Shown: positions 9,100 to 64,000 of the stretch, one piece after another
How positions within the stretch are numbered: position 1 is the first letter of the stretch
Layout: each line of letters begins with the position of its first letter
Assembly (NCBI GenBank): GCA_009103225.1
Contig: RHPI01000638.1
Coordinates: 744,001-808,000 of the forward strand
Direction of reading: 5' to 3'
Origin: Chlorokybus atmophyticus
Taxonomy: Eukaryota; Plantae; Mesostigma and Chlorokybus algae
Length of the DNA stretch: 64,000 bases
Position numbers and translations under genes: made by a program
The notes under the pieces: model-generated
The model's database searches: none
What the model saw: the letters and a program-made list of their open reading frames with translations, nothing else
What the model was told of the DNA's origin: nothing

Positions 9100-10249
9100 A
9101 TTGTTGCTGATGAGTTGTTCATCGTCGTTCATCGCCGTTGCACCTGTCGATAGGTTTGTGGGGTTTGCATGTGGTTGTCGTGTTTTGTGTCTGCAGATGT
9201 GCGCATGGACTCAGTGGACTAAGTAAGTGTTCGTTTTGCAGCAAGGGTAGATGCGCTTGAAGACAGGGCATGTGAAGTTGCTGCGTCAAGGTGCTGGCAC
9301 GGACATCACGGTGAGTGCTGGAGTGGATGCGAGAAAGCGTGCACGTGTGCATGTGTATGTGTGCGCTTGCATGCGGGTTTGCGGATGTGTCCATATGCAT
9401 GGTATGTTTCTGTGCAAACGTTCGCGAGCGTGCCTAGGTTTGCTGCATGTGAATGCTGTCACTGCCAGTAATGAGTACCATGTTCGTGGCTGCTGCCAGA
9501 CAAGAAGGTGCAGACTTGTAAGAACAACACACTATTGTTGGTTGACTCAAGCAGAGTTCAGTTCAACCTGAAGCCGTTTGCTATCATTGCGCAGGTAGCC
9601 CACCATTGTCCTTATGGCCATGACCCAACATACCAGTGCAACCTTGTTAAGGCGCTGCCTTCTATTGGCGTGCGGTGCAGCAACGGTGAGGAGAAGCAAG
9701 GCGGCCTGTTGGCTTGACCACTGCTGATCTATGACCGACATATGTTGTACGGTGTGGGCGTGCGTGTACAGACGGGGAAGTATGACTTCAACCAGCCGCT
9801 AGTGGCATGGGCACTCAACTATCCGTATGGCGCCATGGGCATGGTCCACACGGTGGAGATGCATCCCGCGTGTCACACCAGATGCTCACAGCCCCACACA
9901 CGTGCATCCGCGTGCGCACGCAGGCAGTTGCATGTCAACATGCGGATGTTGCTGTTGGCTACAGCAAGCACTGCAACTCTCTGCATGGCTGGCTGTAGCA
10001 CCACGAGTCTTGCCTGTGTGGGTCGACATCAACAACAACGCCTCGCGCAATATGTTCTTGCAACTGGTAAGAAGCCTGCCTGCGCTGCGCTGCAGACCTG
10101 TTGCTTTTGGGTTGACGTTGATGAGGCATCCAGTGAAAGTGTGCCAACTGCAGCTTGGTGCTGCTATTGTTGTTGCGTGGCAGGGATTTGTGATGGACGG
10201 CGTTTGTGTCACTGGGGTTGACAGCAAACTTAGTGACCCAGCGCAGTAA
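9100..10249 (+). pseudogene. GLYAT/FR47-like GNAT acetyltransferase, 5'-truncated pseudogene (copy A)
   Basis: Exon remnants match copies B and C: HVKLLRQGAGTD (with a 1-nt insertion), VAHHCPYG, YDFNQPLVAWALNYPYGAMGMVHTVE, VWVDINNNASRNMFLQL. The VYP exon and the EYRRKGLAK segment are largely deleted and one donor site is lost. Confidence 0.85.
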
Positions 10250-13500: not shown

Positions 13501-14774
13501 CATATAACAACGCGTACAGGGACCTTGCATTCGCCGGACTTTCAGGACCCTTGCCGAGTACATTGGGCAATCTAGTTAGCCTCCAAACCTTGTAAGTTCA
13601 CCCGGTAACGAGAGGTTACAGTTTGCAACAATGTCTCATTACGTAACACCGGACATACCCTCGTGCGCTGCCATCACATCATGTATTGTTGATTGACATG
13701 CATGTATGTGCAGGAGCCTTGAAGGAAACAACTTTGTCGGATCGGTGCCAAGCACGTTTGGCAACTTCATCAACCTCAATTCTCTGTGAGTTGTGACCAT
13801 GCATCATACCGTCATTGCACAACGCATGGCGTGATGCACTCCTAGGACTTGTCAAGGTTTCCCTATATGACAAGTCATATGGACATGCATGCATACATAC
13901 ATGACTCTGTACAAACAGCTGATTAGACCGTTGCAACGGAGCATTGCATACTACTGACACACACTCGTATGCTTCCATTACAAGTGTTGTTGATTGACAT
14001 GCATGTGCAGGGACCTCTCTAACAACAAACTTAAAGGATCCGTGCCAAGCACATTAGGCAACTTGATCAACCTCGACACTCTGTAAGTTGCGACCATGCA
14101 TCTCATTATTATTGCTCAACATATGCCTCTTAGGTCTGTCGAAGGTTGTTTTATCTGACAAGTCACGGTGATACATGCGTATATATACAGGGGATTGTAC
14201 GGCAACCAGCTTGTTGGACCGTTGCCACGGAGATTGAGCAACCTAACGAAGCTCACATATATGTAAGTTGTATTGTGCAATGCACATTGTGTCGTAGCTG
14301 CCAATCATCATGTGTTGCACCATTGTGCTTTCACTTCAAGTTGTATGCTCGTGTATGCATGCAATCTAAGATAAGATGTGCAGCGACGTATCCGACAACC
14401 AAGGGCTATGCGGCAACATCCCCCCGTTTGGAAGTGCGGTATACATAAACTACTCCAACACTGGCCTTGGCAGTCCCTGCCCATTGCCTCCCCCTCCCCC
14501 ACCCCGTCGTTCTCCCCCTCCTCCTCCTCCAAGACCTTCCCCGCCGCCTCCTCCTCCTCGTCGTTCTCCACCTCCTCCTCCTCCAAGACCTTCCCCACCT
14601 CCTCCTCCTCGTCGTTCTCCACCTCCTCCTCCTCCTCCTAGACCTTCCCCGCCTCCTCCTCCTCGCTCTCCGCCTGTGATCCGTTCCCCTCCGCCGCCCC
14701 CGACAGCCTCCCCGCCTCCTTCTCCTCCTTCTCCTTCTCCTTCTCCCTCGCCGAGGCGTCCACCACCTCCCTAA
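10533..14774 (+). CDS. Secreted tandem LRR-extensin-like protein: signal peptide, LRRNT, 4 LRR, Ser-Pro linker, LRRNT, 7 LRR, extensin tail (multi-exon)
   Basis: Signal peptide MAASGGPLLPLLLPVLLLLLLGS. N-caps (GWPD..YDPC/YDAC..TC). Phase-2 LRR exons such as DLSGNTFTGPIPSTWGSLTALQDM (11569-11640) and DLSNNKLKGSVPSTLGNLINLDTL (14011-14082). Caps NGICG..C and NQGLCG..C. SP(4-6) repeats. The exon 2/3 junction phase is ambiguous. Confidence 0.9.
14480..14771 (+). repeat. Extensin-type coding tandem repeat
   Basis: Alternating units of about 27 nt encoding PPPPPPRRS and PPPPPPRPS. Confidence 0.9.
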
Positions 14775-14810
14775 TCATCCTGTCATTCTCCGTTCTACAC
14801 GTATGGGAGT

Positions 14811-15662
14811 ATGGCAGTTGTTGAGATCAGGGATCTGATTAGCCACGTGAGTAGCAGCCAGAGTTCTTGCGGCTTATTCTCCCTTGTGAAGTGGCTCATA
14901 TTTCGCATGCTTTTTCCCCGAGACTTGGCAGGTATCTACTGTTTCCCTTCCATGCGTTGGCCAGTGCCCTTCATGCCTGTAGGTTTGTGGATGTGGTGGT
15001 GTTTTTGGCGACTTGTACTAGCTGTGGATATTGAACTCGAACCCAGCTCCTGATGCAGTTTATCCCTCTCACACTTTCCGCTGCCTGCATTGGAGTGTTG
15101 GAGGTCTCATGAAACGCGGGGTGCGCGACAAACTCGACTCTCTGCTCCAAGCCAATAATAAACATGTAGCGGTCCTTTCAGAAACACAGCGCTCTCCGCC
15201 CGCAGCACACAAGAACAAGCTGGGTAACGAGATCATGTGCTTTGCCGAGACGCCGGGCTGGGCGGCTTGGAGGCTGACCAGGAGGAGGAGGAGGAGCAAG
15301 AAGGTCATGCAACAGTGTGACTCGAAGCTTTCACTTGCACAACTGACTGGCGAACCACAGCCCCCCCTCCCCCCTCCTAACAATGCTCGCGCGTGCTTAC
15401 GAACAAAAGCACACACGCACATGTTTACGCAGAATCTCACAGACAGACCTGGACATACTTGTGCAGTTGATCCTGAGATGAAGCCTGCAAAGTAGCAAGG
15501 CCAACCAAGCCAAGAGTAGCATGCCAAAGCCAAGAAAGGCAACAAGTGGTGTGGGCATACGCACTCGCTGCAGCACACATCAGTAGTCGCGGAGTCCAAC
15601 ATTTGGTACAAGTGCTTTGTTCCAAGTATTTGATGCACAAGAGATGTTGATTGGCTGCATCA
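14811..15662 (+). mobile_element. Remnant of an APE-type non-LTR retrotransposon with a degenerate 2A-like peptide
   Basis: LVLAVDIEL(+1 nt)NPAP at 15012-15051, then FRCLHWSVGGL..VAVLSET, resembling the APE/EEP N-terminal motifs (hxWNVxGL..hhLxET). Confidence 0.65.
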
Positions 15663-16307
15663 TGGGTTGTGTACACGGGCCTACATTCTTTTCGTGCATC
15701 CCTGCATGCGCATGCATGCGCGTTATACTGCAACTTGTGTAGGACATGCATTGGATGAGGGTGGTTGTCAAGCGCGTACGGTCACGCATACAAAGGCTAC
15801 CGCCAACATAGCAACAGTTTCCACTAGGTGCAAGTACTCGTGTGATTCAACTCTACTCAGCCAGTCTTCTTATGATTGTCATTGCGTGCTCCCCGCCGCT
15901 GTGTTTGGCTGAAATGCACTACCTTTAACACGCTGCCTACCCAATTCTTGTGAGCTTTTGACACTCTGCCAGCAAGAAGTACACCAAAGCCAAGTGGGCC
16001 CCCTTGTTATAAGCACGCCAGCCATCAACAGCAGCAATGTCCAATAACCTCTTTACTGTCAGTTATTTGTGGGCATACAATACGCCTGCCATTTCACGAA
16101 ACAAGAAAAGTGACTGAATTTGTACCCCAACTTTCAAAGTCATAGTTGAGGCAGTCTTGCTTGTGTGTGTGGTAACACCAGCCCTGGCTATGCACCTCAA
16201 TCCAAACCAAGCCGCTACACGTTGGTGCTTGAGGAGGAAACACAAACAGCAGGAGGCCTGGAAGGCAACATCAACAGTCCCATCCACCGCTGGCTGGCCC
16301 GTGTGTC

Positions 16308-17946
16308 TCACTTCCCAATGCAGAAGCGGCTGAATATCACATTGAGCACGTCCTCGGTGACGTCCTCGCCGGTTATTTGTCCGAGCGCGAGGGCGGCCTC
16401 GCGCAGGTCGATCGTCCAGAAGTCCACGGGCAGATCCTGCTCCACGCTGCTACGCAGACGCTGCAGCGCAGCGCGCGCCCGCACAAGCGCCTCAGTCTGC
16501 CTCTGCTCATGCAAACACAACCCGACATGAACCCAACATGTTGGAGATGATGGTACCATCGCGCACACCGCATCTTGCTGGGATGGGGAACAAAGCTTTG
16601 CATGCCAATGTGTCACAGTTTCCTGGTGCTGTATTGCGTCGGTATGGCGGTGCGTTGTGTTGTTAAGTTGATTTGAGTGGTGTTGCTGTGCGTTGCGTTG
16701 TATTCAGTGTGTTGTGTCCAGTTGTGTATGTCTTGAAACCTCACCTCATTGACGGCCCACGCCGCCCCGCCTTCTTCCGTCCGTCCCGCGCCAACGATGT
16801 CCAGTAACGCAGCCTCAAGCGCGTCAATGCCGTCGCCTGTGGCGGCGCTGAGTGGCACCACCGCCGCGACAGAGGATTCGTTGGGGACGCTCACGCCGGC
16901 CGCGGACGCGCGGTCCACCTTGTTGATGGCCAACACCACGGGCGCGGCACTTCTTAGATGGGAAGAGGAGGAGGAGGATGTGGGGTCGGGTTGTTGTTGG
17001 TCCCGCTCCAAGACTGAAACTGGGGTGTTCCTTGGCTCGGCCCCTTCAACATCTGCATGCGTACATGTATATGTGGAAGTGCGCGTGCATAAACACGCAT
17101 ACACACACACACGTACGTGCACACGCACGTACGCGCGCGCACGCACACACACAACCAAACAACATCCCATACACAGCTTCAGGCCACACTCCTGCAATGC
17201 AACACACATTGCGCAAACGTACCCATTGACTTGTATAACTTTGGAGCGAGTGACATGGGACCGGCTAGTTTGCCAGAGGACTCCATGTTGGCATCCTCAT
17301 TATCGACGTCATTGACAAAGAGGGCTCTGTGGATTTTGCCGTCATCTTCAGTCCATCCGTCCTCTGCGCTGACAACAAGCACCACCACATCCGCACGCAA
17401 AGCTGCCTCGCGAGACCTCTCCACGCCTGATGCAACCACATCGTGTCAACGAATGCGAAACAAAGAGCATGGACAAGTTGCCCATGGATCTGCACGCACA
17501 TCAAGGTGTTACACAAGCACATGCATACACGCACGCATTCAGACATGCACGCATACACACCCACATGTACGCATCAACACATGCCCACACGTGCACGCGT
17601 GCTCACGCATGCCGACGTTCACATGCATACACATGTACACGCCCGCATGCACCAGATACCAGCCCGCGCGTACGCGCTTTCCCACCTATCCGTTCCACTG
17701 TGTCGGTGGTGTCCCGTATGCCGGCTGTGTCGAGCAGTCGCACTGGGATGCCGTTGACCACGACGCCGGCCTCCACGACATCGCGCGTGGTGCCGGGGAT
17801 GTCCGTCACGATCGCGCGAGAACTCTGACTCCACTTGTTCAGAAGACTGGACTTGCCGACATTGGGACGACCCACCAAAGCAACCTGCAAGACATTGGGG
17901 TTTGTTGAGGTTGATGTCGTTGTTGTGTTGTGGCTGCTGCTGCTGT

Positions 17947-33998: not shown

Positions 33999-34412
33999 GG
34001 TGGCGGTGGCGGTGCCAGAGGCGCGGTAGGGCAGGGCAGTAGGGCGCCCGGCGGCGCCCGCTGGGCTTGCTCGCAGTGCAGGTGCAGGTGGTACATAACA
34101 TCCATGCTGTACACTATGTGTACAGCATGGATGTTATGCTGTTGTACAAAAGGGGTATGTTGGGATGATAGCATGCATGGTGTGCTGGCAGTAACAGTGA
34201 CATTCACCAAAAACACTCATCACATAGGTCACCATCAGGCTAGTATTTATATAAGCCTACTCTTTGCACAACCCCTATCAGCCTGCCCCGTCAGTCGTGC
34301 GAGCATGCATGAAGTAATCATTTGCCCACATGGGCCATGTATTGCTGCATTGCTTGTGATAGTTACGGCGGTATATAGTGTGATAGCGTGGTAGCGTTCA
34401 GTTGCGAGGGGN

Positions 34413-34695
34413 AAGGATGAGAATGAAGAGGTCCTCCACGAACCTACACACTGGATGGTGCGTTTGCGAATGCCAGCTCGCGTTGAGTCCAGCTGTGGAA
34501 GCAGCGCATCTCGCAACCGTTCGTGTTCAGGTATGAGCAGCGGACCGAAGCGCTGTAACTCTTCTTGTAGTATGTCCAAACATTCGCTTCGCACTTCTGG
34601 ACTGACATCCTGTCGCCAAGCTCGTCAGTATGTCATACGCAAAAGGCAGGCAGACATTCTTCAAGAGAAGCAATACTCGCAGGCACAAGCAAAAG
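34413..34695. repeat. 283-bp identical copy of CAND1 segment 45731-46013, bounded by G-runs and an N
   Basis: Same sequence at offset 11318 wherever compared; GGGGN on the left and G9 on the right. Probably an assembly artefact. Confidence 0.85.
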
Positions 34696-44000: not shown

Positions 44001-47000
44001 AGTACAGATCTGACCTGGTCTTGGTCTTGGGCTGTCAACCGCTGTAGGATACATGTGTACAGGGGCTTGACGTACGGCTGAAAGTCAAATGTGCTGGAGC
44101 CATCAACCCTTGGCCGAATGACTTTTACCAACTCACTGCACACGCGGAGAGCTTCTGCAGTAACTTTGTAGTACCGTTCATTAACACATGCTAGCACAGG
44201 GCCTGACAGCGTCTGAACATAGGGCTGAAACACCTCAGGAGCATGTGATGCCATCAGTAGCCGCAAGAACAGCAAAGCCTCAATCTTCACATTCGAGTTG
44301 GACTGTTTGTCGGTTAGGGCCCGCTCAACGCCTGGCACGAGGGTAGGGACATTTTCGTCCAAGCTATTGGGCAGCACTTGTACCAACTCCTTCAACAAGG
44401 AGAAGGCTCCGACCTGCTCCAAACAAGTGTTGATACAAAACTTGCAAAGCACTCAAGTTTGAATCGCTCAACCCTATCACCTTTGTTTTCAATGACTTTT
44501 CTTTCAACTGCCTGTTGATGGCCTTGACAATGTCTGGAACAGCGGCGCGAAGAAGATTGGCTGGGCTGCTGGCAGGTTCAGGACCTTCTGGCGATGTGTA
44601 TACCCGCATGACTGACCCTGTTTGACGCAGCAAGTCGGAGAACGCAGCAAAGACATCGAGTTTGACGTTCTCTTCTCGTTCTCGGAAACGCGTCAACAAT
44701 TCAGGACAAGCCTTGGCATAAACAGTGGGTAGCAGCTCTGGGCGCGACGTGATAACCGAGCCAAGGCATTTTGCAGCTGCCCTCCTGACCTGTTATGCCA
44801 AGCAGGCAGCTGTGAGTGATTATGTCAGTCATTTGCATCTATACACTTAATCTGTGCCCATGTGCAGTGCGTTCTGAAGTGCACATGAACGCACTGCACA
44901 AGGCAGTCATGCAACCATCAGTTGGTCTGGTGTGGCAAAGACTGGACGAAGCATACCTTCCAACTTATGTCCTCGTCGTCGCTGTACTCCTCTCCGCTTT
45001 CTTCGTCCTCATCGGCCTCATCTTCTCCACTTGCATTGCCATCTTCCTCCATGTCGTCCGTGAAGTTTGGGTCATATTTGATGTACTCCAAGCAGACATC
45101 TAGAATGAGAGGGCAGGAGTCTGTAACTTCCCGCGGACATCTCTGTATGAAAGACTCGAGTGCCTGCGGAAAGGTTATAACCATGAAGTGGGCTGAACAA
45201 CAGCCACAAGTGACAACCCTGACAAAGCTGTCGGGTCAGGAGAGAGCCTAACTATGCGCATGCGTATGTGCGTGCAATGCACTGTGAAGGCCCACCTGCA
45301 GGCTGTTCTCCCTAAGCTCATCATCGTTTTCTGAAGCATTCCTGCAGTATGACAGCAGGATAGGAACGACGTCCTTCAGATGCCGTCCAAAGCGATATCC
45401 CACAGATCGGCTGCAAAGCGTTGATAGCAACTAGCTCAACAACACAACCAACAGCATGCAAGTGCGGTGTGCCAAGCAGTGGTGGTGTTTGCTACGCAGC
45501 CCCAAGTTTGGCTACATATCAGAGCGAGAATAAGAGGCAGCACCTGAGGGCACCCACAGTTTGTATGTATGTCCGTATGAGATCTGGCTTCATATCCTCC
45601 TGCTGCAGTTTCTGAATAACTGCCATGCTCACAGTCAGCAAGACAGAGTCTGTCATGCTGGCAACCAAGACACCTGCACATCAGGAAAACAAATTTAAGA
45701 AGATGGGCACAACCACATACGGCAAGTGAAAAGGATGAGAATGAAGAGGTCCTCCACGAACCTACACACTGGATGGTGCGTTTGCGAATGCCAGCTCGCG
45801 TTGAGTCCAGCTGTGGAAGCAGCGCATCTCGCAACCGTTCGTGTTCAGGTATGAGCAGCGGACCGAAGCGCTGTAACTCTTCTTGTAGTATGTCCAAACA
45901 TTCGCTTCGCACTTCTGGACTGACATCCTGTCGCCAAGCTCGTCAGTATGTCATACGCAAAAGGCAGGCAGACATTCTTCAAGAGAAGCAATACTCGCAG
46001 GCACAAGCAAAAGTCAGCACTCGTGTGCAATGTTAGGCCAAAAAAAAGAAAACATGTGCTGACTTGACTCTTATTACATACCGGAGAGCTAATGCCATCA
46101 AGCAAACGAGGTGTCAAAACTTTGACGGTTGCGGTCGCAATGGCTCCAAATGGTGCCTCTGAAACAACTGTCTTCAGGCCAATACTAGCAATGTCACGCT
46201 GTTGCTCCTTGCCACGCAAGAGCTTCTGACAAAGCGTTTCTACAATGTTCACCACACGAGCCTCGTTGACCTTCTTCACCAGTGGCGCCAGACTGCGCGA
46301 GCAATCTATTAGCCATGCAACCCGATACCTATCAGCACGTTCCTGTCTTGCTACAAGCTCCATAATACACAGGCCGTTTACAAGCATGGGTCAACTGGAA
46401 GCAATTGTGTACATGTCGCAGACCAGAAGCTGAATGTTGCAAGTGCAGCGAATCAATTTGCACGGTTGTACACGTAATACGGCTTATGCTACTGTTGCTG
46501 TCTGACTGAGTTGGCTACAAAACACTGCGCTGGTCAATCTCAGTGATTGCGTGTGGTGCTTCACAGCTGACAAATAGCAGTCACCGCTGCTTACCACTTC
46601 ACAGCGAGGCCTGCTATGTCACCGGAAGCATCTTCCAGCTGCTGTAAAACGACTTGGCAGATTTTTTGCTCTGTGTCTGCGTCTGCTTTGAACTCGGCCT
46701 TGCTAAGCTCATTGAGCAGATCTGATGTGGCCATGTACCGGTAATCCTTGTCCTTTGAGGCAATCTGCAATGGCATGCAGATTAAGACACAGATGAACGA
46801 CATGCAGGCCAGCATGCATGCAAATATGCGTGTTCTAAATGCACAACTGCATGGCTTCCTGCAGGGCAGGGCTAGGGACACTGGCACAGAAGATTGACTT
46901 GAAGCAATTGACGTGCTGCATGCATGCTACCTTCCCATTAGCATGCAGGTAGCTGAGCTTAGGGTTGCTATGCATATCAGCCAGGTTAAATACAAATTGC

Positions 47001-49634: not shown

Positions 49635-51904
49635 CTAACAGCTGGGCAGCCCAGTCAATTGTGACTGCATTGACTTGCTTTTGGGCTTGCTGTCAACCCA
49701 GTGACACAAACCGTCCTGCACAAACCCCTGCACGAATATGCATCAGCAATCCACTGCTGTTAGTACATTTTTCTACCTCCCAAAGCATCAATTCTGCAGC
49801 GCAGGCAGGCTTCTTACCAGTTGCATGAACATCTTGCGTGAGGCGTTGTTGCTAATGTCGACCCACACATACGGCGTCATGCCACTGGCGAGTTGCGCCT
49901 CCGCGAGTGCCACGACCGCTGCTTTCGCCAGACCTTTTCTCCTGTACTCCTGTGCACATCAAGCAAGTCATCAGTAGCTCCATGGAAAGACCCCATGCAA
50001 CAAAAACAGTGGCATCGCTTGCTGTACCATATACAGCATCCATGCATTCACACATGCACACGTGTGCATGCACACGTGTGCGTGCGCACGCGCGCACATG
50101 GTTGGCATATGTGTGACATGCGGGGCTGACCTCCAGCGTGTGGACCATGCCAAGGGCGCCATATGCGTACGTGAGTGCCCATGCCACTAGCGGCTGATTG
50201 AAGTCATACTCCCCATCTGCGGGCGCACAAACGCGTATGTTACTCATAGATTAGCAGTTGACAAGCCAACAAGCCACCTTGCTTCTCTCACCATTGCTGC
50301 ACCGCACGCCAACAGAAGGTAGCGCCTTGATGAGTTGGCGCTGGTATGTTGGGTCCTTGCCATACGGCCAGTGGTGGGCGACCTGCACAACATATTGATC
50401 AGCTGCAGCTTGAACTTAGCATGAGTTAAAATAAATTGGAGCCAATGGTGTTGTTACCAACTCTGCATCTTCTTCTCTTAGTGGCCCGAGCGCAAAGCCA
50501 CTTTCTGGTAGCGAACCCGTCAGGACACTTGCATCTTGCAGCATGAGCCTGTCATTCGGGTACACCTACCAAGCGTTACGCAACAAACATTGTGGACGCA
50601 ATACTCGGCAGTGGCAGCAAGCACATGCACCGGACCTGTCATACGCAACAAGGTCTCTAGTTATGTTACTTATATTGTCTTTTTCTTGATGTTGAGTCAG
50701 CTATGTTGTTTACTGATGACTTGAGTTTGATGAAGCGCTAGACACACATACGGACAACGCACGGGGAGACACACTGCGCACGTGTGCCCACACGTGCAAG
50801 GACACGCACGGACGCACGCATGCACACATGCACACGCTCGCTCAGGTTCGCACACAACCATTTCACTCACCATTACGTCCGTCCCTGCAGCTTGACGCAG
50901 CAACTCCACATGCCTGTCTTCAAACGCGCCTGCATTTGCACACCAGTCGTACACTTACTGCCACTAACTTCATGCTTACAACTGCAAACTAGCCACAACA
51001 ACCACATGCAAACCCAAATGTACCTATCGACAGGTACAACGACTTGAACAACTCATCGGTGAAGGCGCTGGCAGCCGCCTCGCGGTGGATGGCATAGAAA
51101 TAGCAGGAGACGGCGTTGCCGTCGGTGTCATCATCATTGTTGTCGGCGTTGTTGTTGGAGGAAGAGGAGGTGTTCTCCTCTTTGGGTTCGTGGCGTCTGA
51201 GCCAGAAGAATGCTGCGGGATAGAGCAGCCTGCGCAGTAAGTCAGACTGCAGCAGCATGTTGGCCACACCAATCGCATGCCTACATTCGTGCACGCTGTG
51301 AATGATGGCATACTTAGTGCGCATAGCAATAGCTTGCCGGGATTTCCATGATAGCCACACATTATGCAATCACCATCACTATGCACACACGATGTGTGTG
51401 TAGTGGCCATTGCTGATGTGCCATGCGCATGGCTGCAATTAAGCTTCTATGTACACCCATCATGAGGTATTTAAGCAAGAATAACAAACCAGTTGTGTGT
51501 GTGCGCGTGCGCGTGGATGCGTGTGCGCAGGCGTGCGCGTGCTTGTGTGTGCGTGCGTGCGCATATGTACGCTCACACCTGTCAACATAGAACTCGTATC
51601 CATCCGCGAGGCTTGCGCGTTCGGGGTCAGGACTTAGCCACGCGCGGAGGCAGGATGCCACTTTCAGCCCGCTGCCATCGCGCTCCAAGCGCGTATCATC
51701 CAGGTACTGTTGGACGCCACGCTCGCTGTCTTTCACGGGCGGCAACGGCGGCGGGGCCAGATGCAGGCTGTGAGTTGGGTTGGTGTGGGTGGTGTTGCTG
51801 TTGCGGGAGTGTTTAGGCGGGTTCACTTGCGCTGCATTCGCGCGCTCGATCGCGTGCGCGAGGGGGAGAAGACAAGCCAAATCTCCGCGCTCGATGCGGA
51901 TCAT
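49635..51904 (-). CDS. GLYAT/FR47-like GNAT acetyltransferase (copy B, 8 exons in frame; possible extra 5' exon near 52520-52830)
   Basis: Exons join in frame through GT-AG sites: MIRIERGDL.., RLLYPAAFFWLRR.., GAFEDRHVELL.., VYPNDRL.., VAHHWPY.., PLVAWALTYAYGALGMVHTLE|EYRRKGLAKAAV..PYVWVDISNNASRKMFMQL|GF. RRKGLA is the GNAT acetyl-CoA motif A. Confidence 0.85.
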
Positions 51905-54900
51905 CGTGCGAATTGTCAGTTGACCTGATATACAGTTCTGTCGTTATCCCTGTCCAAGTAAGGCAACCGCTGCAGCAATAGGTGCTGCAGCAGTTTTGTG
52001 TATGCTGGCGTGCGCATGTGTGCATGTGTACAAAAGAACGTCGAGGGTGTTGACTGCGTGCAGCGCATGGCATATACCAACACACAACATGCATGACATG
52101 CATTACAAGCGCATGGCATACAACACCACTCAGTCAATAGGACACCACCGGGCTACTGTATGTACGTGTACAGGATCTCTGCCAATACGTGCTTACCATG
52201 CTAAGTTTGAATGCGCGCTTTTTCACTTCGTAGATTCAAGCCGTGACAAAACACGCACGCGCATTTACCCGTGTGCGTGTGTCTCTGTGAGGTGCAGTGG
52301 TCCACACCAGCAACGCCCTACATGCATGCCAACTGAGGATGGGCGCAGATGTATGTAAAAAAACCTATCATCTCAATCCCATAACCATACACAATATACC
52401 CAACAAGTGTGGTTGCCACCCTTGACGGCAGTCTAACAACCAGGTTGATGACTGACCCATGCTAGTGCAAGCTGCAGTGACGACCTCTCCAAGTCCGTAG
52501 CATGGCTTGGACACCGTACCTGCAGGCACGCACTTGAAGGTGGTGGACAAGGCAGAAGAAGAGGAGAAGAGGAGAAGACGCAGGCGGTGGAGGAGGCAAC
52601 GGAGGCGGCGGCGTGCATGCGTCGTTGCTTGGCAGGCGGCCTGTTTAGACAGTGGCAGTGTGTAGGCGTGAGCATCGACTACGGACAGTCGATGCCTGTC
52701 GGCCAAGCACGTCGACGGTCGACCGGCACGGCCTACACCCGGTAGTGCCCCGCTGTGCATTATCGCTACCGCAGGCAGGCATCGACTGTCGGTGCCATGC
52801 ACGGTCGTCGATGCACTAAAAGAAAACATTGAAGGATTACATAGTAACCTAGTATGACACGGTCACCCACTTTCTAGTAAGACCCAAACACGCTTTTGTC
52901 TTGTGTTGTATTTGCTTGCTGTGCACTAGCTCCGTTCAACTGTGTTTACTCGGTGCACGTGCGCACAGTTGTGTTTGGGCGCATACGTGCATGTGTGTAA
53001 GAAAACAAGTGTGTCGAGCAGATTTAATTGTCACTCTATGCACACATGAGTGCATGCTCGAGTGCGCACATGCACCCACCGCACCTTACTTGCACAAGCA
53101 TCCATATGGGTACATGCACGTTAGTACAATCAAATGCTTATGTGCGCACATACACGGTCGCATTGCGCGCACGCACGGAAAAGGATGAGGGACGCATACA
53201 TAACGCACTGCATGGCGCAACTGCTCATTGGCGCTGGTCAGCTGGCTCACTGCTTTTGCTTGTCTTGTTGTTTTGGATGTTGTTGCAATTGTTAGCGGTG
53301 CCCTCTACATCATTGCTGCTGTTGTGCAATGTTTCGACACGTGTTAGGTGTGGCGGTGCTTGTTGCATTGTTTAACCGCATCTACATATGTGCCAGAGCT
53401 AGTGCAACGCACACAACTGTATACTATGAATGACAAAATTTGCACACCCCACGCGTATGCGCATATGCGTATACATATGATGCGAGCAGACACGCACTCA
53501 GTCGGTTGCATGCCCTCGGGGAAAATATAATGGCACAGTACTTGAAACTCGAAAGATTGTGTTTGTAAACTCCAGCGGCAGCAGCAAAAACGCGCACGTG
53601 GTTTATTGCAAAAACACACTGCCGCACTTATGATTATACCCCAACTGCTGCTGTTATCATCACTTGCTTACTACCGAGCCAAAGCAGGCAACCCCTTCAC
53701 TCTCTTCCATACGGATTTTGCACAAATCTACAAACACATCAACAGGTGAGTCCGACTCACCGAGTCGGTGCGCAATTCAGATGCATACTACGGGGGTTAT
53801 GGTTTGGTTCACTGATCAAGTTGCAGAGTCGTTATAGCCGTTATTTGAAGCATGCAAGTGCATCAATGCCAACAACCCGCTCATGCTGAACGGGCTTGCA
53901 GCGGTGTATGCCTTATGTAGACACGTCATACCGTTGTTGTGCACATGTGGGAAAATTCGTGTTTATTTGCGATGAGAGCAACGAAATGCGCGTTTTGTGC
54001 AGTGATGTTGTTCGCGTTGAACCGACCAACGCGACGGTCGGTTGCGCCACTTGTGGCGTACCCCGTACACGATGGTGTACGCAAAATTATAATAGTGGTT
54101 GTCATGTTATAGCTGGTGCTCGGACTGGTACTCGTGCATTGGAAGGCGAAGCACGATATGTGTGTCTCTCTCACCTCCCTCCATGTATGTCCAATGTTAC
54201 GTGTGTGCATGCGGAGTACAAGCTAGTGCGTGCGCATTATTGCACCGCGGACGAGTTTTGCCAATGTGTGAGAGTGTATGCCAGCGTGCGTGCAAGTGGG
54301 TCCGTGGGTACTATTTCAATGAGGAGTGTTGGCCTCCATGCGTGCGTGTGCGTTAGATGCATATACATGTGTATGCTCGCTTGTATGTGCGAGCACTGTG
54401 GCACGCATGTGGGATGCGTGGGTACGTGTCGGTTTATAGTAGTGCGGGCGGGTGCTACCGGCGTTCGTGTGCGCATGTGTGCCGTTGTGCCCGCGACTCA
54501 ATAGCTTCACTGGTTGCCTTGTGTACGTGGACACAACAATGCTGTTACATGCATACACGCTCACAGTGCTGTCACATTGTGCAACATGCAGCTGCAGTGC
54601 GAGCGCGTACTGAACTAGCTGCGATGATTTGCAATGTGTATAAACGACTCTTTGCAGAGTTCACTTCGCGGTAGGCCAACCCCGCAACAACTATGACTCG
54701 AGAACTTTGCACGTACACCGTCGCTCAATTGCATGATGCCAAAGTATAGATACTGAGTTGGGCTTAGACTGGCAGTGGCACTGACCCGAGAACCCATACA
54801 ACATATGCGTCGACGATGTGCAACTTGCACATGAGTTGAACTCATGCTTTAAGAACTATGGATTCGACTATCATGCCGTACACTCATCTACTTGCTACGG

Positions 54901-56702: not shown

Positions 56703-57058
56703 NNNNNNNNNNNNNNNNNNNNNNNNNNNNNNNNNNNNNNNNNNNNNNNNNNNNNNNNNNNNNNNNNNNNNNNNNNNNNNNNNNNNNNNNNNNNNNNNNN
56801 NNNNNNNNNNNNNNNNNNNNNNNNNNNNNNNNNNNNNNNNNNNNNNNNNNNNNNNNNNNNNNNNNNNNNNNNNNNNNNNNNNNNNNNNNNNNNNNNNNNN
56901 NNNNNNNNNNNNNNNNNNNNNNNNNNNNNNNNNNNNNNNNNNNNNNNNNNNNNNNNNNNNNNNNNNNNNNNNNNNNNNNNNNNNNNNNNNNNNNNNNNNN
57001 NNNNNNNNNNNNNNNNNNNNNNNNNNNNNNNNNNNNNNNNNNNNNNNNNNNNNNNNNN
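56703..57058. other. Assembly gap (356 N)
   Basis: Run of N. Confidence 1.

Positions 57059-57136
<78 letters not shown>
57059..57136. repeat. (TC)39 microsatellite next to the gap
   Basis: Read from the sequence. Confidence 0.95.
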
Positions 57137-57140
<4 letters not shown>

Positions 57141-57564: not shown

Positions 57565-59761
57565 TTATGACCACGCTGGCTCCTTTTTGGGTCTGCTGTC
57601 AACCCAATGACACAAACCGTCCTGCACAAACCCCTGCCACGCACAACACCCACTACTGTTGGCACACATTGAATCGATACCACATAATCCAAAAAGCATC
57701 AAGTCTGCAGCGCAGGCAGGCAGGCTCGTACCAGTTGCAAGAACATCTGGCGCGAGGCGTTGTTGTTGACGTCGACCCACACGTACGGCGTCATGCTGCT
57801 GGCGAGTTGCGCCTCCGCAAGTGCCACCACCGCTGCTTTTGCCAGACCGTTTCTCCTGTACTCCTGTGCATATCAAGCAAGTCATCAGTAGCTCCATGGA
57901 AAAACCCATGCAACAAAATCACTGGCATTGCTTGCTGTACCATATACAGCATCCAAGCATTCACACATGCACACGTGTGCGTGCGCACGCGCGCACGTGG
58001 TTGCATATGTGTGACATGCGGGGCGCACCTCCAGCGTGTGGACCATGCCAAGGGCGCCATGCGGATACGTGAGTGCCCATGCCACTAGCGGCTGACAGAA
58101 GTCGTACTTCCCGTCTGTACGCGCACACCCACATCATACAACACATGTTGGTCATAGATCAGCAGTAATCAAGCTAGCCAACAAGCCACCTTCCTTCTCT
58201 CACCATTGCTGCATCGCACGCCAACTGAAGGTAGCGCCTTAATGAGATGGCGCGGGTAAGTCGGGTCATTGCCATAAGGGCAGTGGTGGGCTACCTGCGC
58301 GAGTACAAACAACAGACAGACAGATTCAGCTTGAAGTCCACATGAGACAAACCAATCACAAGGTAGTATTAATTCTACCAAGTCTGCATCTTCTTCTCTC
58401 AGGGGCCCGAGCGCGAAGCCACTTTCTGGTAGTGGGCCTGCCAGGACGCTTGCGCCCCGCAGCGTGAGCCTGTCGCTCGGGTACACCTGGCAGGAGACAC
58501 ACACCACGGAAACATGCATGCATTACTGGCAGTGGGAGCATCACGCACCTCAGTCAATCAACCTGCCCTGCACAGTGAGGTCTCTGATTGACTTTGGTTC
58601 TTCTTTATCCTTTGATGTGCAACTTGTTTGCTGATGAGTTCAGTCTTGTACTTGCCAACACACAGGCAGACATACAACCCGTATGGGCGCACACGCACAC
58701 GCACACGCTTTCCGAGCTGGCACATCCACTCCAGCACTCACCATTACTTCCGTCCCAGCGCCTTGACGCAGCAACTCAACATGCCTGTCTTCCAATGCAC
58801 CTGCGCTTGCACATGAGATGTTCACTGGCTGCCACACACAAGCTCATGCTCACACCAACAGACAACACACAACAACCACATCAACAGGCACATGTACCTA
58901 TCGACAGGTGCAACGACCTAAAAATCTCATCGGCAAAGGCGCTGGCAGCCGCATCGCAGTGGATGGCATAGAAATAGCAGGAGACAGCGTTGGTATTATT
59001 GTCATTGGCGTCATTGTTGTTGTTGTTGTTGTTGACAGAAGCGTCTTCTCCGGGGCGTCTGAGCCAGAAGAATACTGCGGGATAGGGCAGCCTGCAAGGT
59101 GAGTCAGACTGCAGCAGCATGTTCACAACACTAGTCACATGCTTTCATTCGTGTATGTTGTTGGCATAAGCAGCGCACACACAGTAACAGCTAACTGGGA
59201 GTACCATTGCATGACCGTAGATACATTCACAGTTACCATCAGTGTACATGCACATAATGTGCGTGTAGTGCCAATTGCTATCGTAGCGCGATGCGCATGG
59301 CCGCAAGTAGTGAGCTTGTATGTGACAGCCAACCACTTGAATTTGATCAGTATCTAGGCTTGCAACGAGCGACCATTGTCTAGGTGGGTGCGTGTGCACA
59401 GGCGTGCACGTGTTGTTCATGTGTGTGCTTACCTGTCAACATAGAACTCGTATCCATCTGCTAAACGCGCTTGCTCGAGGTTGGGACTTAGCCACGCGCG
59501 GAGGCAGGCTGCCACTTTGAGCCCACTTCCATCACGCTCAAAGCGCGTATCATCCAGGTACTGTTGGACGACACGCTCGCTGTCTGTCGCGGGCGGCAAC
59601 GGGGGCGGGGCCACATGCAGGCTGTGAGTCGGGTTGGTGTGGGTGGTGTTGGCGTTGCAGGTTGGTGTGGGTGGTGTTGGCAATGGGGCTGCATTCGCGC
59701 GCTCGATGGCGTGCGCGAGAGGGAGAAGACAAGCTAAATCTCCGCGCTCGATGCGGATCAT
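57565..59761 (-). CDS. GLYAT/FR47-like GNAT acetyltransferase (copy C, 8 exons in frame)
   Basis: Same exon-intron structure as copy B; EYRRNGLAKAAV..PYVWVDVNNNASRQMFLQL|GFVQDGLCHWVD. The upstream region 60150-60550 is homologous to 52500-52860. Confidence 0.85.
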
Positions 59762-61187
59762 TGTGCCAATTGCAACACGCACACCTAATGCATGACAATG
59801 TCTTCATCAACATCAGTACAGATTAGTACTATCAGGTGTGACAGCTGTGCAGCAACGGCTGCAGCGGTGGTTGCCTTGCAGTTTTGCGTGTGTGCGTGCG
59901 TGCATGTGTTTGTATGTGTGAGGCCTTCCAGCAACACGTGCTGAACATGCCATGACAGAGTATGCACATGCCCATGGAAGTGCATCAACCCGTGTGTGCG
60001 TGCATGCGCATGTGTCTCTGTAAGGTGCAGTAATCACCACACCAACAACGCCCACCTCAGCAGACATTGTACATCTATGCCAACGGTGTCACGAGCTCAC
60101 AACAACCAGTGTATGTGATGTAACCATTGACTTCAGTCCAACAACCAGATCATGCACCTGCAATATGGCAAAGTCTGCAAACCACTGACTTGGTTTACAG
60201 ACTGCGAATGCAGGCACGCACTCGAAGGTCGTGGTGGAGGAAGAGGAGGAGGAGGCGGAGAAGCCGGCGGAGGCGGCGGCGGAGGCGGAGGCGGAGGTGG
60301 AGGTGGAGGTGGAGGCGGCGTGCATGTGCCCGCTTGGCAAGCAGCGTCTGTTTAAAATACTGGCTGTGTGGGCGTGAGCATCGACCACCGACGTATGTCA
60401 CGTCGACGGTCGACCGCCACGCTGCCCTACGGTAACTGAACTACCTGTGCATTGTAGCTAGTTTGCGCTGCGCTGACAATCCTCGACTTTCCGCCATGCA
60501 CGGTCGTCGACGCACTAGTATAGGGGGTGAGTCAGAGTGTATATGACACAGGCACTCTCTGCCATGGAGCTGGCCTGCGGATTAGGGCGGCGGTGAGTGG
60601 CGCGGGAGAGCGGTAAGGGAGGAGCGGGAGTAAAGGACTAGCGGGCGTCGGTGCACTCAGGCCCTTGCCTCGGGTTGCCCCAGGTGCCTTGCTCGTGCTC
60701 ACGCTTTGTTACTGTGACACTTGTCGCTATTTTTCCCACTCCCTCATTCTTGCGGTGTCTGTTAGAATCAAATGCAGCCTGATCCCTCCTGCTTCTTCCC
60801 CATACCTGCTCTGATTCTGTCACCCTCCCTCCTCTCTTGTTTCTCTATGCCTCGTCCCTTCACCTTGCCAGCTTCTTTGTACCCTCCCTCCTCTCTTGTT
60901 TCTTTATATCTCTCCCTTTCACCCTGACTGCTCTCCCTCCCTCCCTCCCTCCCTCCCTCCCTTTCTCTCTTAGTGTCAAACACAGCCGTGGTTTCCCTCT
61001 CTCATTTGAGCTTTTCTGTCGCCTTAGCTCCGACTCTCTTGACACACGGACCTTCCTCCTTCTAACCCTTACTCTCCAGCGCCTCTTCCCATTTATTGCC
61101 AATAGCTATGTCTAGTTCTCTCTCTCAATGCATGGAACAGCCGCTTACTCTCTCCTTGTGCTGTTTGTGTCTCATTGCTTGCCGCAG

Positions 61188-63178: not shown

Positions 63179-63238
63179 CTCGCTCTCTCTCTCTCTCGCT
63201 CTCCCTCCTTCTCGCTCTCCCTCCCTCTCGCTCTCTCG
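63113..63238. repeat. (CT)n-rich microsatellite
   Basis: Read from the sequence. Confidence 0.95.
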
Positions 63239-63262
63239 CCCTAACCCTAACCCTAACCCTAA
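63239..63262 (-). repeat. Interstitial telomere-like repeat (CCCTAA)4
   Basis: Four exact CCCTAA units (TTAGGG on the minus strand) directly after the CT tract. Confidence 0.85.
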
Positions 63263-64000
63263 CCCCCATGCATAATGGCCATGTCAGCTGGATCATCATA
63301 TCCCACATATCGCGGCGGGGTCACGCCTAATGCACTTTGCTTGGTTCTACAACTCACTGCGCCTGATGTTTACTTAATGTTCACCAATGGTTGGCTCGAA
63401 CACGAGCGCTTTGAAATGTGTGCATTTGGAGCAAAATGCATGTAGACGTGCACTTTACGTGGGTTCCCCCAAAATACCGCGCCCGGTGCACGTGCGTGTA
63501 TGTAATGTACATACAGGCACGTACACCACGCGGATAACTACTTGCGGCAAGCAGTTATCATCCATAAATGCACGTGCACTTACAGCGATTAAACAAGCAG
63601 TGCAGTTTGCGCACGAAATACTGACGCCAATGATCAGCGAGCAACGGTGTTACAGCTGTTGCAAGACGACTATTATCGGTTTGCGCGTTCATGCACACGT
63701 GATGCTCCCACTTGGTGTGTAACAAACACAGCAAGATGACACATTGTTGCATGGCATGCAACAGGTGTTGTGCATTTTTCACAAGAAGCTGTGTGCAACA
63801 CATTAGCGAACAGCAAGAACTTTGCAGATTGTTGCTAACTCCGTAAGGCAGTTATTGCGGCCTTCGGAATACGATTATTATATTATAACATCTTGTGTCC
63901 ATTGGATGGTGTCCGACACTGTGCATGCACACACGATGACTTTTACAAAAGCCATTATGGCCAATATGCACACCTCCAAAATGACGCCCAGCTTTTTGTT

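Follow-up and report, generated by a model that had tools for sequence, protein, structure and literature searches.

The sequence discussed here lies in a gap of 1.5 kb between two converging genes, an LRR-extensin-like gene on the plus strand and mnmE on the minus strand, within a 64,000-nucleotide stretch of the genome of the streptophyte alga Chlorokybus atmophyticus; this stretch is referred to below as the window. Given that genes converge on the gap from both sides, the DNA between them is expected to be 3'-untranslated or intergenic. A scan for the TGTAA poly(A) signal found no site between 14266 and 17509, and the ends of the untranslated regions were thus not placed. The last exon of the LRR-extensin-like gene (Table 1) yielded no match in a Pfam search and includes a Ser/Pro-rich repeat with a 27-nt period (family D4) at 14474-14766. 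The ORF at 14811-15053, which contributes to the feature analyzed here, shares its frame with this exon, the TAA stop codon at 14772-14774 standing between the two. On the other side of the gap, the mnmE/trmE GTPase gene spans 16311-17439 on the minus strand; its upstream ORFs look like a G domain by eye and have no Pfam match.

Several additional features were observed in the rest of the window. A diverged segmental duplication of ~2.1 kb occupies 49796-51915 and 57726-59772, its copies being ~7.9 kb apart and 79-91% identical in many blocks, and a third, inverted copy is located ~40 kb away, at 9267-10088. A 292-nt direct repeat at 34404-34695 and 45722-46013 (99% identity, 11.3 kb apart) could represent either LTRs or a recent duplication. 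An interstitial CCCTAA run at ~63235-63265, of the TTAGGG telomere-like type, is immediately preceded by a long (CT)n/(CTCG)n tract, and an assembly gap at ~57036-57140 abuts a (CT)n tract, the window containing 358 N in total. An Rfam search of the entire window revealed nothing that would point to an EEP family.

Table 1. Predicted features in and around the gap between the two converging genes (positions are those of the window)
Feature	Positions	Strand	Remarks
Last exon of upstream host gene (LRR exons, then Ser/Pro-rich extensin-like tail)	14376-14774	+	From translated sequence; stop TAA 14772-14774
2A-like stretch, first half	14991-15038	+	Frame of ORF 14811-15053: M-WWCFWRLVLAVDIEL; nearest in-frame ATG 14991
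Base to drop for joining the halves	15039	+	Inside the free x codon of D(V/I)ExNPGP; best break column 18 (frameshift-aware scan)
NPAP	15040-15051	+	Frame shared with the endonuclease-like ORF; Gly->Ala at the skipping site
TGA stop of upstream frame (ORF 14811-15053)	15051-15053	+	13 nt upstream of the expected ORF2 start
Probable L1-type AP-endonuclease (EEP) N-terminus, beta1-alpha1-beta2	15070-15195	+	HTFRCLHWSVGGL...VAVLSETQRS; ungapped 42-residue match to L1 ORF2 profile
Weak APE continuation	15196-15267	+	HMMER envelope to residue 82; KLGN aligned to LLGS; similarity ends after
C-terminal exon of mnmE/trmE	16308-16616	-	Ends ...FCIGK; PF12631 (MnmE_helical), E 2.7e-20

The gap first drew attention because an earlier note on this DNA had described a degenerate 2A (StopGo) peptide in front of the start of an AP-endonuclease (APE). 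Direct reading of the sequence bears out the bases that were given for this site, namely, CTA GCT GTG GAT ATT GAA CTC at 15018-15038, G at 15039 and AAC CCA GCT CCT at 15040-15051. The plus-strand ORF 14811-15053 ends in ...MWWCFWRLVLAVDIELEPSS*, and the +1 frame, which is open from stop to stop across 15022-15492 (the listed ORF is 15031-15495), reads LWILNSNPAPDAVYPSHTFRCLHWSVGGLMKRGVRDKLDSLLQANNKHVAVLSETQRS... or, in a second read-out of the same open stretch, LWILNSNPAPDAVYPSHTFRCLHWSVGGLMKRGVRDKLDSLLQANNKHVAVLSETQRSPP.... The string LAVDIEL/NPAP exists only across these two frames, as the note had also stated, and is joined by dropping the single base at 15039. The joined core is V-D-I-E-x-N-P-A-P, with both invariant glycines of the GD(V/I)ExNPGP consensus replaced (GD->VD and NPGP->NPAP). 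The reading frame through the 2A-like motif into the downstream protein is interrupted, with the two halves in different frames and the upstream frame terminating at its own stop codon. Downstream, FRCLHW begins 8 residues past NPAP, correcting the previous count of 7, and the conserved Trp of the putative APE follows 13 residues past NPAP in the same frame. The nearest in-frame ATG is positioned 12 codons upstream of the motif Asp and would make a 20-residue N-terminal 2A.

For the endonuclease-like part, a reference set was assembled by scanning JGI metagenome contigs for back-translated WNVRGL-(21-25)-LQETK, which produced 112 in-frame N-termini. Of these N-termini, 13 run on into ORFs of 879-1211 residues, and the three long ORFs that were checked consist of Exo_endo_phos, RVT_1 and zf-RVT, an APE-RVT_1-zf-RVT architecture that is that of plant-type L1 ORF2. 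Most of the WNVRGL...LQETK matches (loci L061-L180, JGI and ENA metagenome contigs) are plant L1 LINEs, that is, host plant DNA inside "metagenome" assemblies, and a subset of these plant L1 ORF2s begins with a conserved M-N/D-P-S. An L1 N-terminal profile was derived from 84 distinct N-termini and run, unfiltered, on the complete six-frame translation of the window (1470 peptides), in which the stretch 15070-15195 ranked first, with a score of 19.6 bits (E 5.2e-5), the runner-up scoring 5.4 bits, and its 42 residues align without gaps to the profile consensus knlkilsWNVRGLnsrarrdevrelvassrpdivcLQETKle. For calibration, the top score with the same profile was 17.7 bits among shuffled peptides (150 window-equivalents) and 8.1 bits in 1.39 M residues of unrelated real six-frame DNA, and Escherichia coli XthA, a true member of the family, scored 23.6 bits. 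The 31 columns outside the search pattern contribute +10.2 bits, compared with -18.4 +/- 7.9 for the null (p 5e-4).

A protein language model produced a concordant result. In the ESM Atlas, residues 12-72 fall with PF03372 (0.95, 199 shared features), and a query with the entire ORF has short EEP-like proteins as its neighbors (0.88). Taken together, the profile and the language model make it very probable that the start of a LINE endonuclease is genuinely present in this sequence, and the hidden LINE remnant with an AP-endonuclease start that had been proposed for this site is supported on both counts. By the L1 profile, the endonuclease motif block (h-x-h-x-W-N-V-x-G-L ... h-h-h-L-Q-E-T) is present, and its catalytic residues are not intact: the aligned residues are W-S and S-E-T, so that Ser occupies the Asn position and the position of the Gln before Glu, and the Glu is retained. 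The endonuclease-like stretch has no initiator Met in frame.

Conventional searches remained blank. Pfam, run on the ORF and on three sub-pieces, retrieved no EEP family and only a sub-threshold Dynein_AAA_lid hit that we regard as noise; in particular, neither PF03372 nor PF14529, the families that the earlier note had proposed to run on 15060-15300, was matched, because the small size and advanced decay of the fragment put it beyond the reach of Pfam. No EEP family matched the fragment in NCBIfam or in a phmmer search of PDB (E<=10), and the 154-residue ORF found no match when 5.8e9 proteins were screened by word search, nor did 87 residues in a HMMER search of 1.84e9 representative proteins; the scan of JGI metagenomes contained no relatives of the fragment either. 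In a BLASTP comparison with E. coli XthA, the fragment is collinear over 67 residues (XthA 6-70) at 13.9 bits and E 1.3, in a register that places WSVGGL/VAVLSET against FNINGL/VIGLQET of XthA.

These blank results, from Pfam, NCBIfam and PDB through the word search to the all-against-all HMMER comparison, would be expected if the endonuclease-like and the 2A-like stretches both owed their resemblance to chance, being non-coding DNA (3'-UTR or intergenic) that was singled out because a whole genome was read. The E value of 1.3 against XthA and that of 1.5 (4.7 bits) against an ExoIII/APE1-type profile would fit such an explanation as well, as would the scaling of the L1-profile score to the genome (1396 windows), which gives ~0.1 expected chance matches (0.07-0.15). 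We nevertheless consider an origin of both features by chance improbable: two independent methods, the L1 profile and ESM, agree on EEP, no real-DNA null scores above 8.1 bits, the columns outside the motif reach significance by themselves, and the two features would be found side by side by chance only ~1e-5 times genome-wide.

The assignment to LINEs needs to be considered separately, because the N-terminal beta1-alpha1-beta2 motif is common to all ExoIII/APE1/LINE endonucleases. If a cellular EEP gene, for either an ExoIII/APE1-type repair nuclease or another EEP enzyme, had left a pseudo-exon or relic here, this remnant would share the motif and would also account for the BLASTP register with XthA residues 6-70. 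The clade of the fragment was judged against two profiles, plant L1 and ExoIII/APE1, the latter being built in the same way from giant-virus and phage genes. The score of 4.7 bits with the ExoIII/APE1 profile, as opposed to 19.6 bits with the L1 profile, weakens the case for a repair-nuclease relic, and the match is therefore LINE-like rather than repair-nuclease-like; moreover, no further exon-like pieces of an EEP gene are present nearby in any frame. We accordingly regard a cellular origin as very improbable.

The putative LINE is represented by its extreme 5' portion. Full-length APE (255 columns) and ORF2 (1173 columns) profiles match at positions 4-47 only, and no other APE or RT match was detected in any frame at 14000-17000 or elsewhere in the window. 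Within 14700-15800, no usable poly(A), simple-repeat 3' end or target-site duplication was found, the repeats there being short and at chance level; the lack of a poly(A) tail and a target-site duplication is expected since the fragment comprises only the 5' end. As judged from these comparisons, the fragment of ~200 bp is dead, isolated and decayed, and nothing points to present activity.

The 2A-like string was evaluated with a 23-column log-odds matrix made from 120 distinct natural 2A peptides (14 residues followed by GD(V/I)ExNPGP) that were cut from RNA-virus contigs (loci L181-L300). Both strands were scanned with one +1 or -1 break allowed and scored as X; in the database searches the two halves of the frameshifted peptide were used apart, and X stood at the break in the matrix scan. 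Among the null matches of this matrix was a near-2A string, ...TLKGDVEEN-x-GD, lacking NPGP, in six large IMG/VR viral contigs (L021, L031, L037, L042, L051 and L055). The candidate starts at 14982, and its break falls on base 15039, in the x column. With -0.5 bits, it is the best site of the window, followed by sites with -7.3, -8.1 and -9.2 bits. The substitution of Val for the Gly before Asp costs -11.3 bits and that of Ala for the second Gly -10.7 bits, for a total of 22 bits. Exact convolution predicts ~0.18 equally good sites per window and ~250 per genome, and in real DNA there are 5 distinct equally good sites in ~2.1 M positions (~2.4e-6 per position); the core 2A-like motif taken alone is therefore not beyond chance and is worthless as evidence. 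Strings within one deleted base and at most one mismatch of D[VI]ExNPGP have an expectation of 0.05 per window.

The location of the motif is more informative than its composition. It would occupy the N-terminal region of a LINE ORF, ahead of the APE domain, and the probability of an accidental match with its end 13 residues ahead of the Trp is on the order of 1e-4 per LINE 5' end (~7e-5 in phase with the APE frame, 2e-4 in any phase); in 108 upstream regions of reference L1 elements, none exceeded -11.1 in the 2A matrix. This placement could reflect descent from a single-ORF LINE that began with a short N-terminal 2A/StopGo (M-x11-GD(V/I)ExNPGP) directly before the endonuclease, as in L1Tc, Ingi and some CR1 elements, in which case the subsequent decay would have involved a single-base change in each of the two glycine codons and the insertion of a base in the x codon. 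Such a history would explain why the window has its best 2A-matrix site here, why the break coincides exactly with the free x codon, why NPAP shares the frame of the APE and why an ATG precedes the Asp by 12 codons. The proximal context RLVLA (columns 9-13) is also 2A-like, its score of +4.4 bits (p 0.006) falling at about the 5th percentile for natural 2As. A recent preprint reports 2A-like peptides from the ORF2p of a green alga, Haematococcus lacustris, with Dualen/RandI elements among the carriers (Snell and Matreyek 2026, PMC13405545), which lends this possibility some additional plausibility.

On the opposite side of the balance, both glycines that define a 2A are missing and the reading frame is broken. 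With all 14 upstream residues included, the context falls to -5.9 bits (p 0.08), the minimum of the 120 natural 2As being +1.9, so that the distal upstream context lies below every one of them. No relative of the fragment at all, with or without an intact NPGP, was found among the 5.8e9 or the 1.84e9 proteins or in the JGI metagenomes. Furthermore, the APE profile that matches is of the L1 type, and the LINE clades with 2A in PMC3708506 are Rex1, Crack, L2, L2A, CR1 and Ingi, L1 not being among them. The low frequency of such elements bears on the issue as well. LINEs with 2A are rare among eukaryote genomes, so that the prior for a true 2A is low, and with perhaps 50-500 LINE 5' ends in the genome, chance alone would produce 0.01-0.1 cases, a figure comparable in order of magnitude to the prior for a real 2A family. 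On balance, it appears doubtful, if conceivable, that the string is the relic of a true StopGo peptide, and equally tentative is the corresponding notion that an extinct or unrecognised LINE lineage in an early-diverging streptophyte alga bore an N-terminal StopGo before an L1-like endonuclease. The 2A-bearing LINE family that the earlier note envisaged in this alga is thus a less likely reading, given the absence of both glycines, the split between two frames and the failure to find a homologue with NPGP, and the change of frame together with the stop codon suits the ORF1/ORF2 junction of a normal bicistronic L1 equally well.

The explanation that we rank first, and consider somewhat probable, is that of a LINE fragment with a coincidental 2A-like string. 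An old L1-like APE-type LINE would have left here only the first 45-65 codons of the ORF2 endonuclease (15070-15195, perhaps to ~15267), the remainder of the endonuclease, the reverse transcriptase and the 3' end having been lost. LINE insertions are usually 5'-truncated, which is why a later deletion that took everything downstream of the endonuclease start would have to be postulated. The first half of the 2A-like string would be the tail of an upstream frame, possibly the end of ORF1, and the second half would be a short ORF2 leader in another frame. In 39 reference L1 elements, the ORF2 Met is located 3-14 (mostly 5-10) residues before the Trp, and the ORF1 stop, in whichever frame, is mostly within a range from ~40 nt ahead of the ORF2 ATG to a few nt beyond it. 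The distance between the candidate stop and the expected ORF2 start (Table 1) falls into this range, and the frame change therefore resembles an ordinary L1 junction; such a layout is that of a normal bicistronic L1, so neither a frameshift mutation nor a StopGo peptide would be needed.

The preference for a LINE fragment with a chance 2A look-alike has to accommodate observations that count against it. The 2A-like site is the best of the window by 7 bits and is in phase with the APE. In addition, neither a profile of plant L1 ORF1 tails nor Pfam detected any similarity to the upstream frame, so that the ORF1 label finds no support in these comparisons. We infer that the upstream frame could belong to ORF1 and that the 2A-like string is most likely a coincidence.

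Should this be correct, the locus would be a dead transposon scrap between two genes, with no present function. Its interest would be mainly methodological, in that a LINE 5' relic of 45 residues was missed by every standard library and could be recovered with a clade-specific N-terminal profile. The analysis further indicates that a 2A call that requires a frameshift and lacks both glycines cannot by itself carry an evolutionary claim. If, on the other hand, a 2A-bearing lineage did exist, LINEs with 2A would extend to the streptophyte branch and possibly to the L1 clade, and this 200-bp relic would be the only trace of the lineage seen so far; intact GD(V/I)ExNPGP copies in the genome, if there are any, would contribute an L1-like example from a streptophyte to what is a scattered record of 2A acquisition by LINEs. 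The extension would be modest because 2A-like peptides were already reported in green-algal ORF2p in 2026 (PMC13405545).

The closest known counterparts of the fragment are plant-type L1 ORF2 N-termini and the 2A-like peptides of APE-type non-LTR elements. The Haematococcus lacustris elements offer a resemblance in kind, being LINEs of the green lineage in which a 2A-like peptide precedes the endonuclease-RT protein at its N-terminus; they are intact predicted proteins, often with a DUB or PPR domain ahead of the 2A, whereas the sequence analyzed here is a dead 200-bp fragment from a different alga. More generally, APE-type non-LTR elements can carry 2A-like peptides near the N-terminus of their ORF2p, and mutations of key residues in the canonical motif abolish recoding, with the exception of a single E->Q change (Odon et al. 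2013, PMC3708506). The fragment resembles the 2As of these elements in the D(V/I)ExNP-P core, in part the Leu-rich proximal context, the position directly before an in-phase APE and the Met ~12 residues upstream, but differs from them in that both glycines are replaced, the ORF is broken by one base, and the APE match is of the L1 type rather than Rex1, Crack, L2, CR1 or Ingi, with no active relative known. The likeness to L1Tc, the 2A of which was reportedly described by Heras and coworkers in 2006, lies in the 20-residue N-terminal 2A that would result from translation from the ATG at 14991.

Relative to plant L1, the fragment is greatly reduced. It retains only the first 45-80 residues of ORF2, with Ser at the Asn position and Ser in place of the Gln, and lacks an in-frame initiator Met, the RT, the zinc-binding domain, a poly(A) tail and a target-site duplication. 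Within these limits, the similarity to plant-type L1 ORF2 (APE-RT-zf-RVT) is specific, involving an ungapped match of 42 residues with the same 23-residue spacing between GL and (Q/S)ET, and the short spacer that follows the upstream stop is like that of L1 ORF1/ORF2 junctions.
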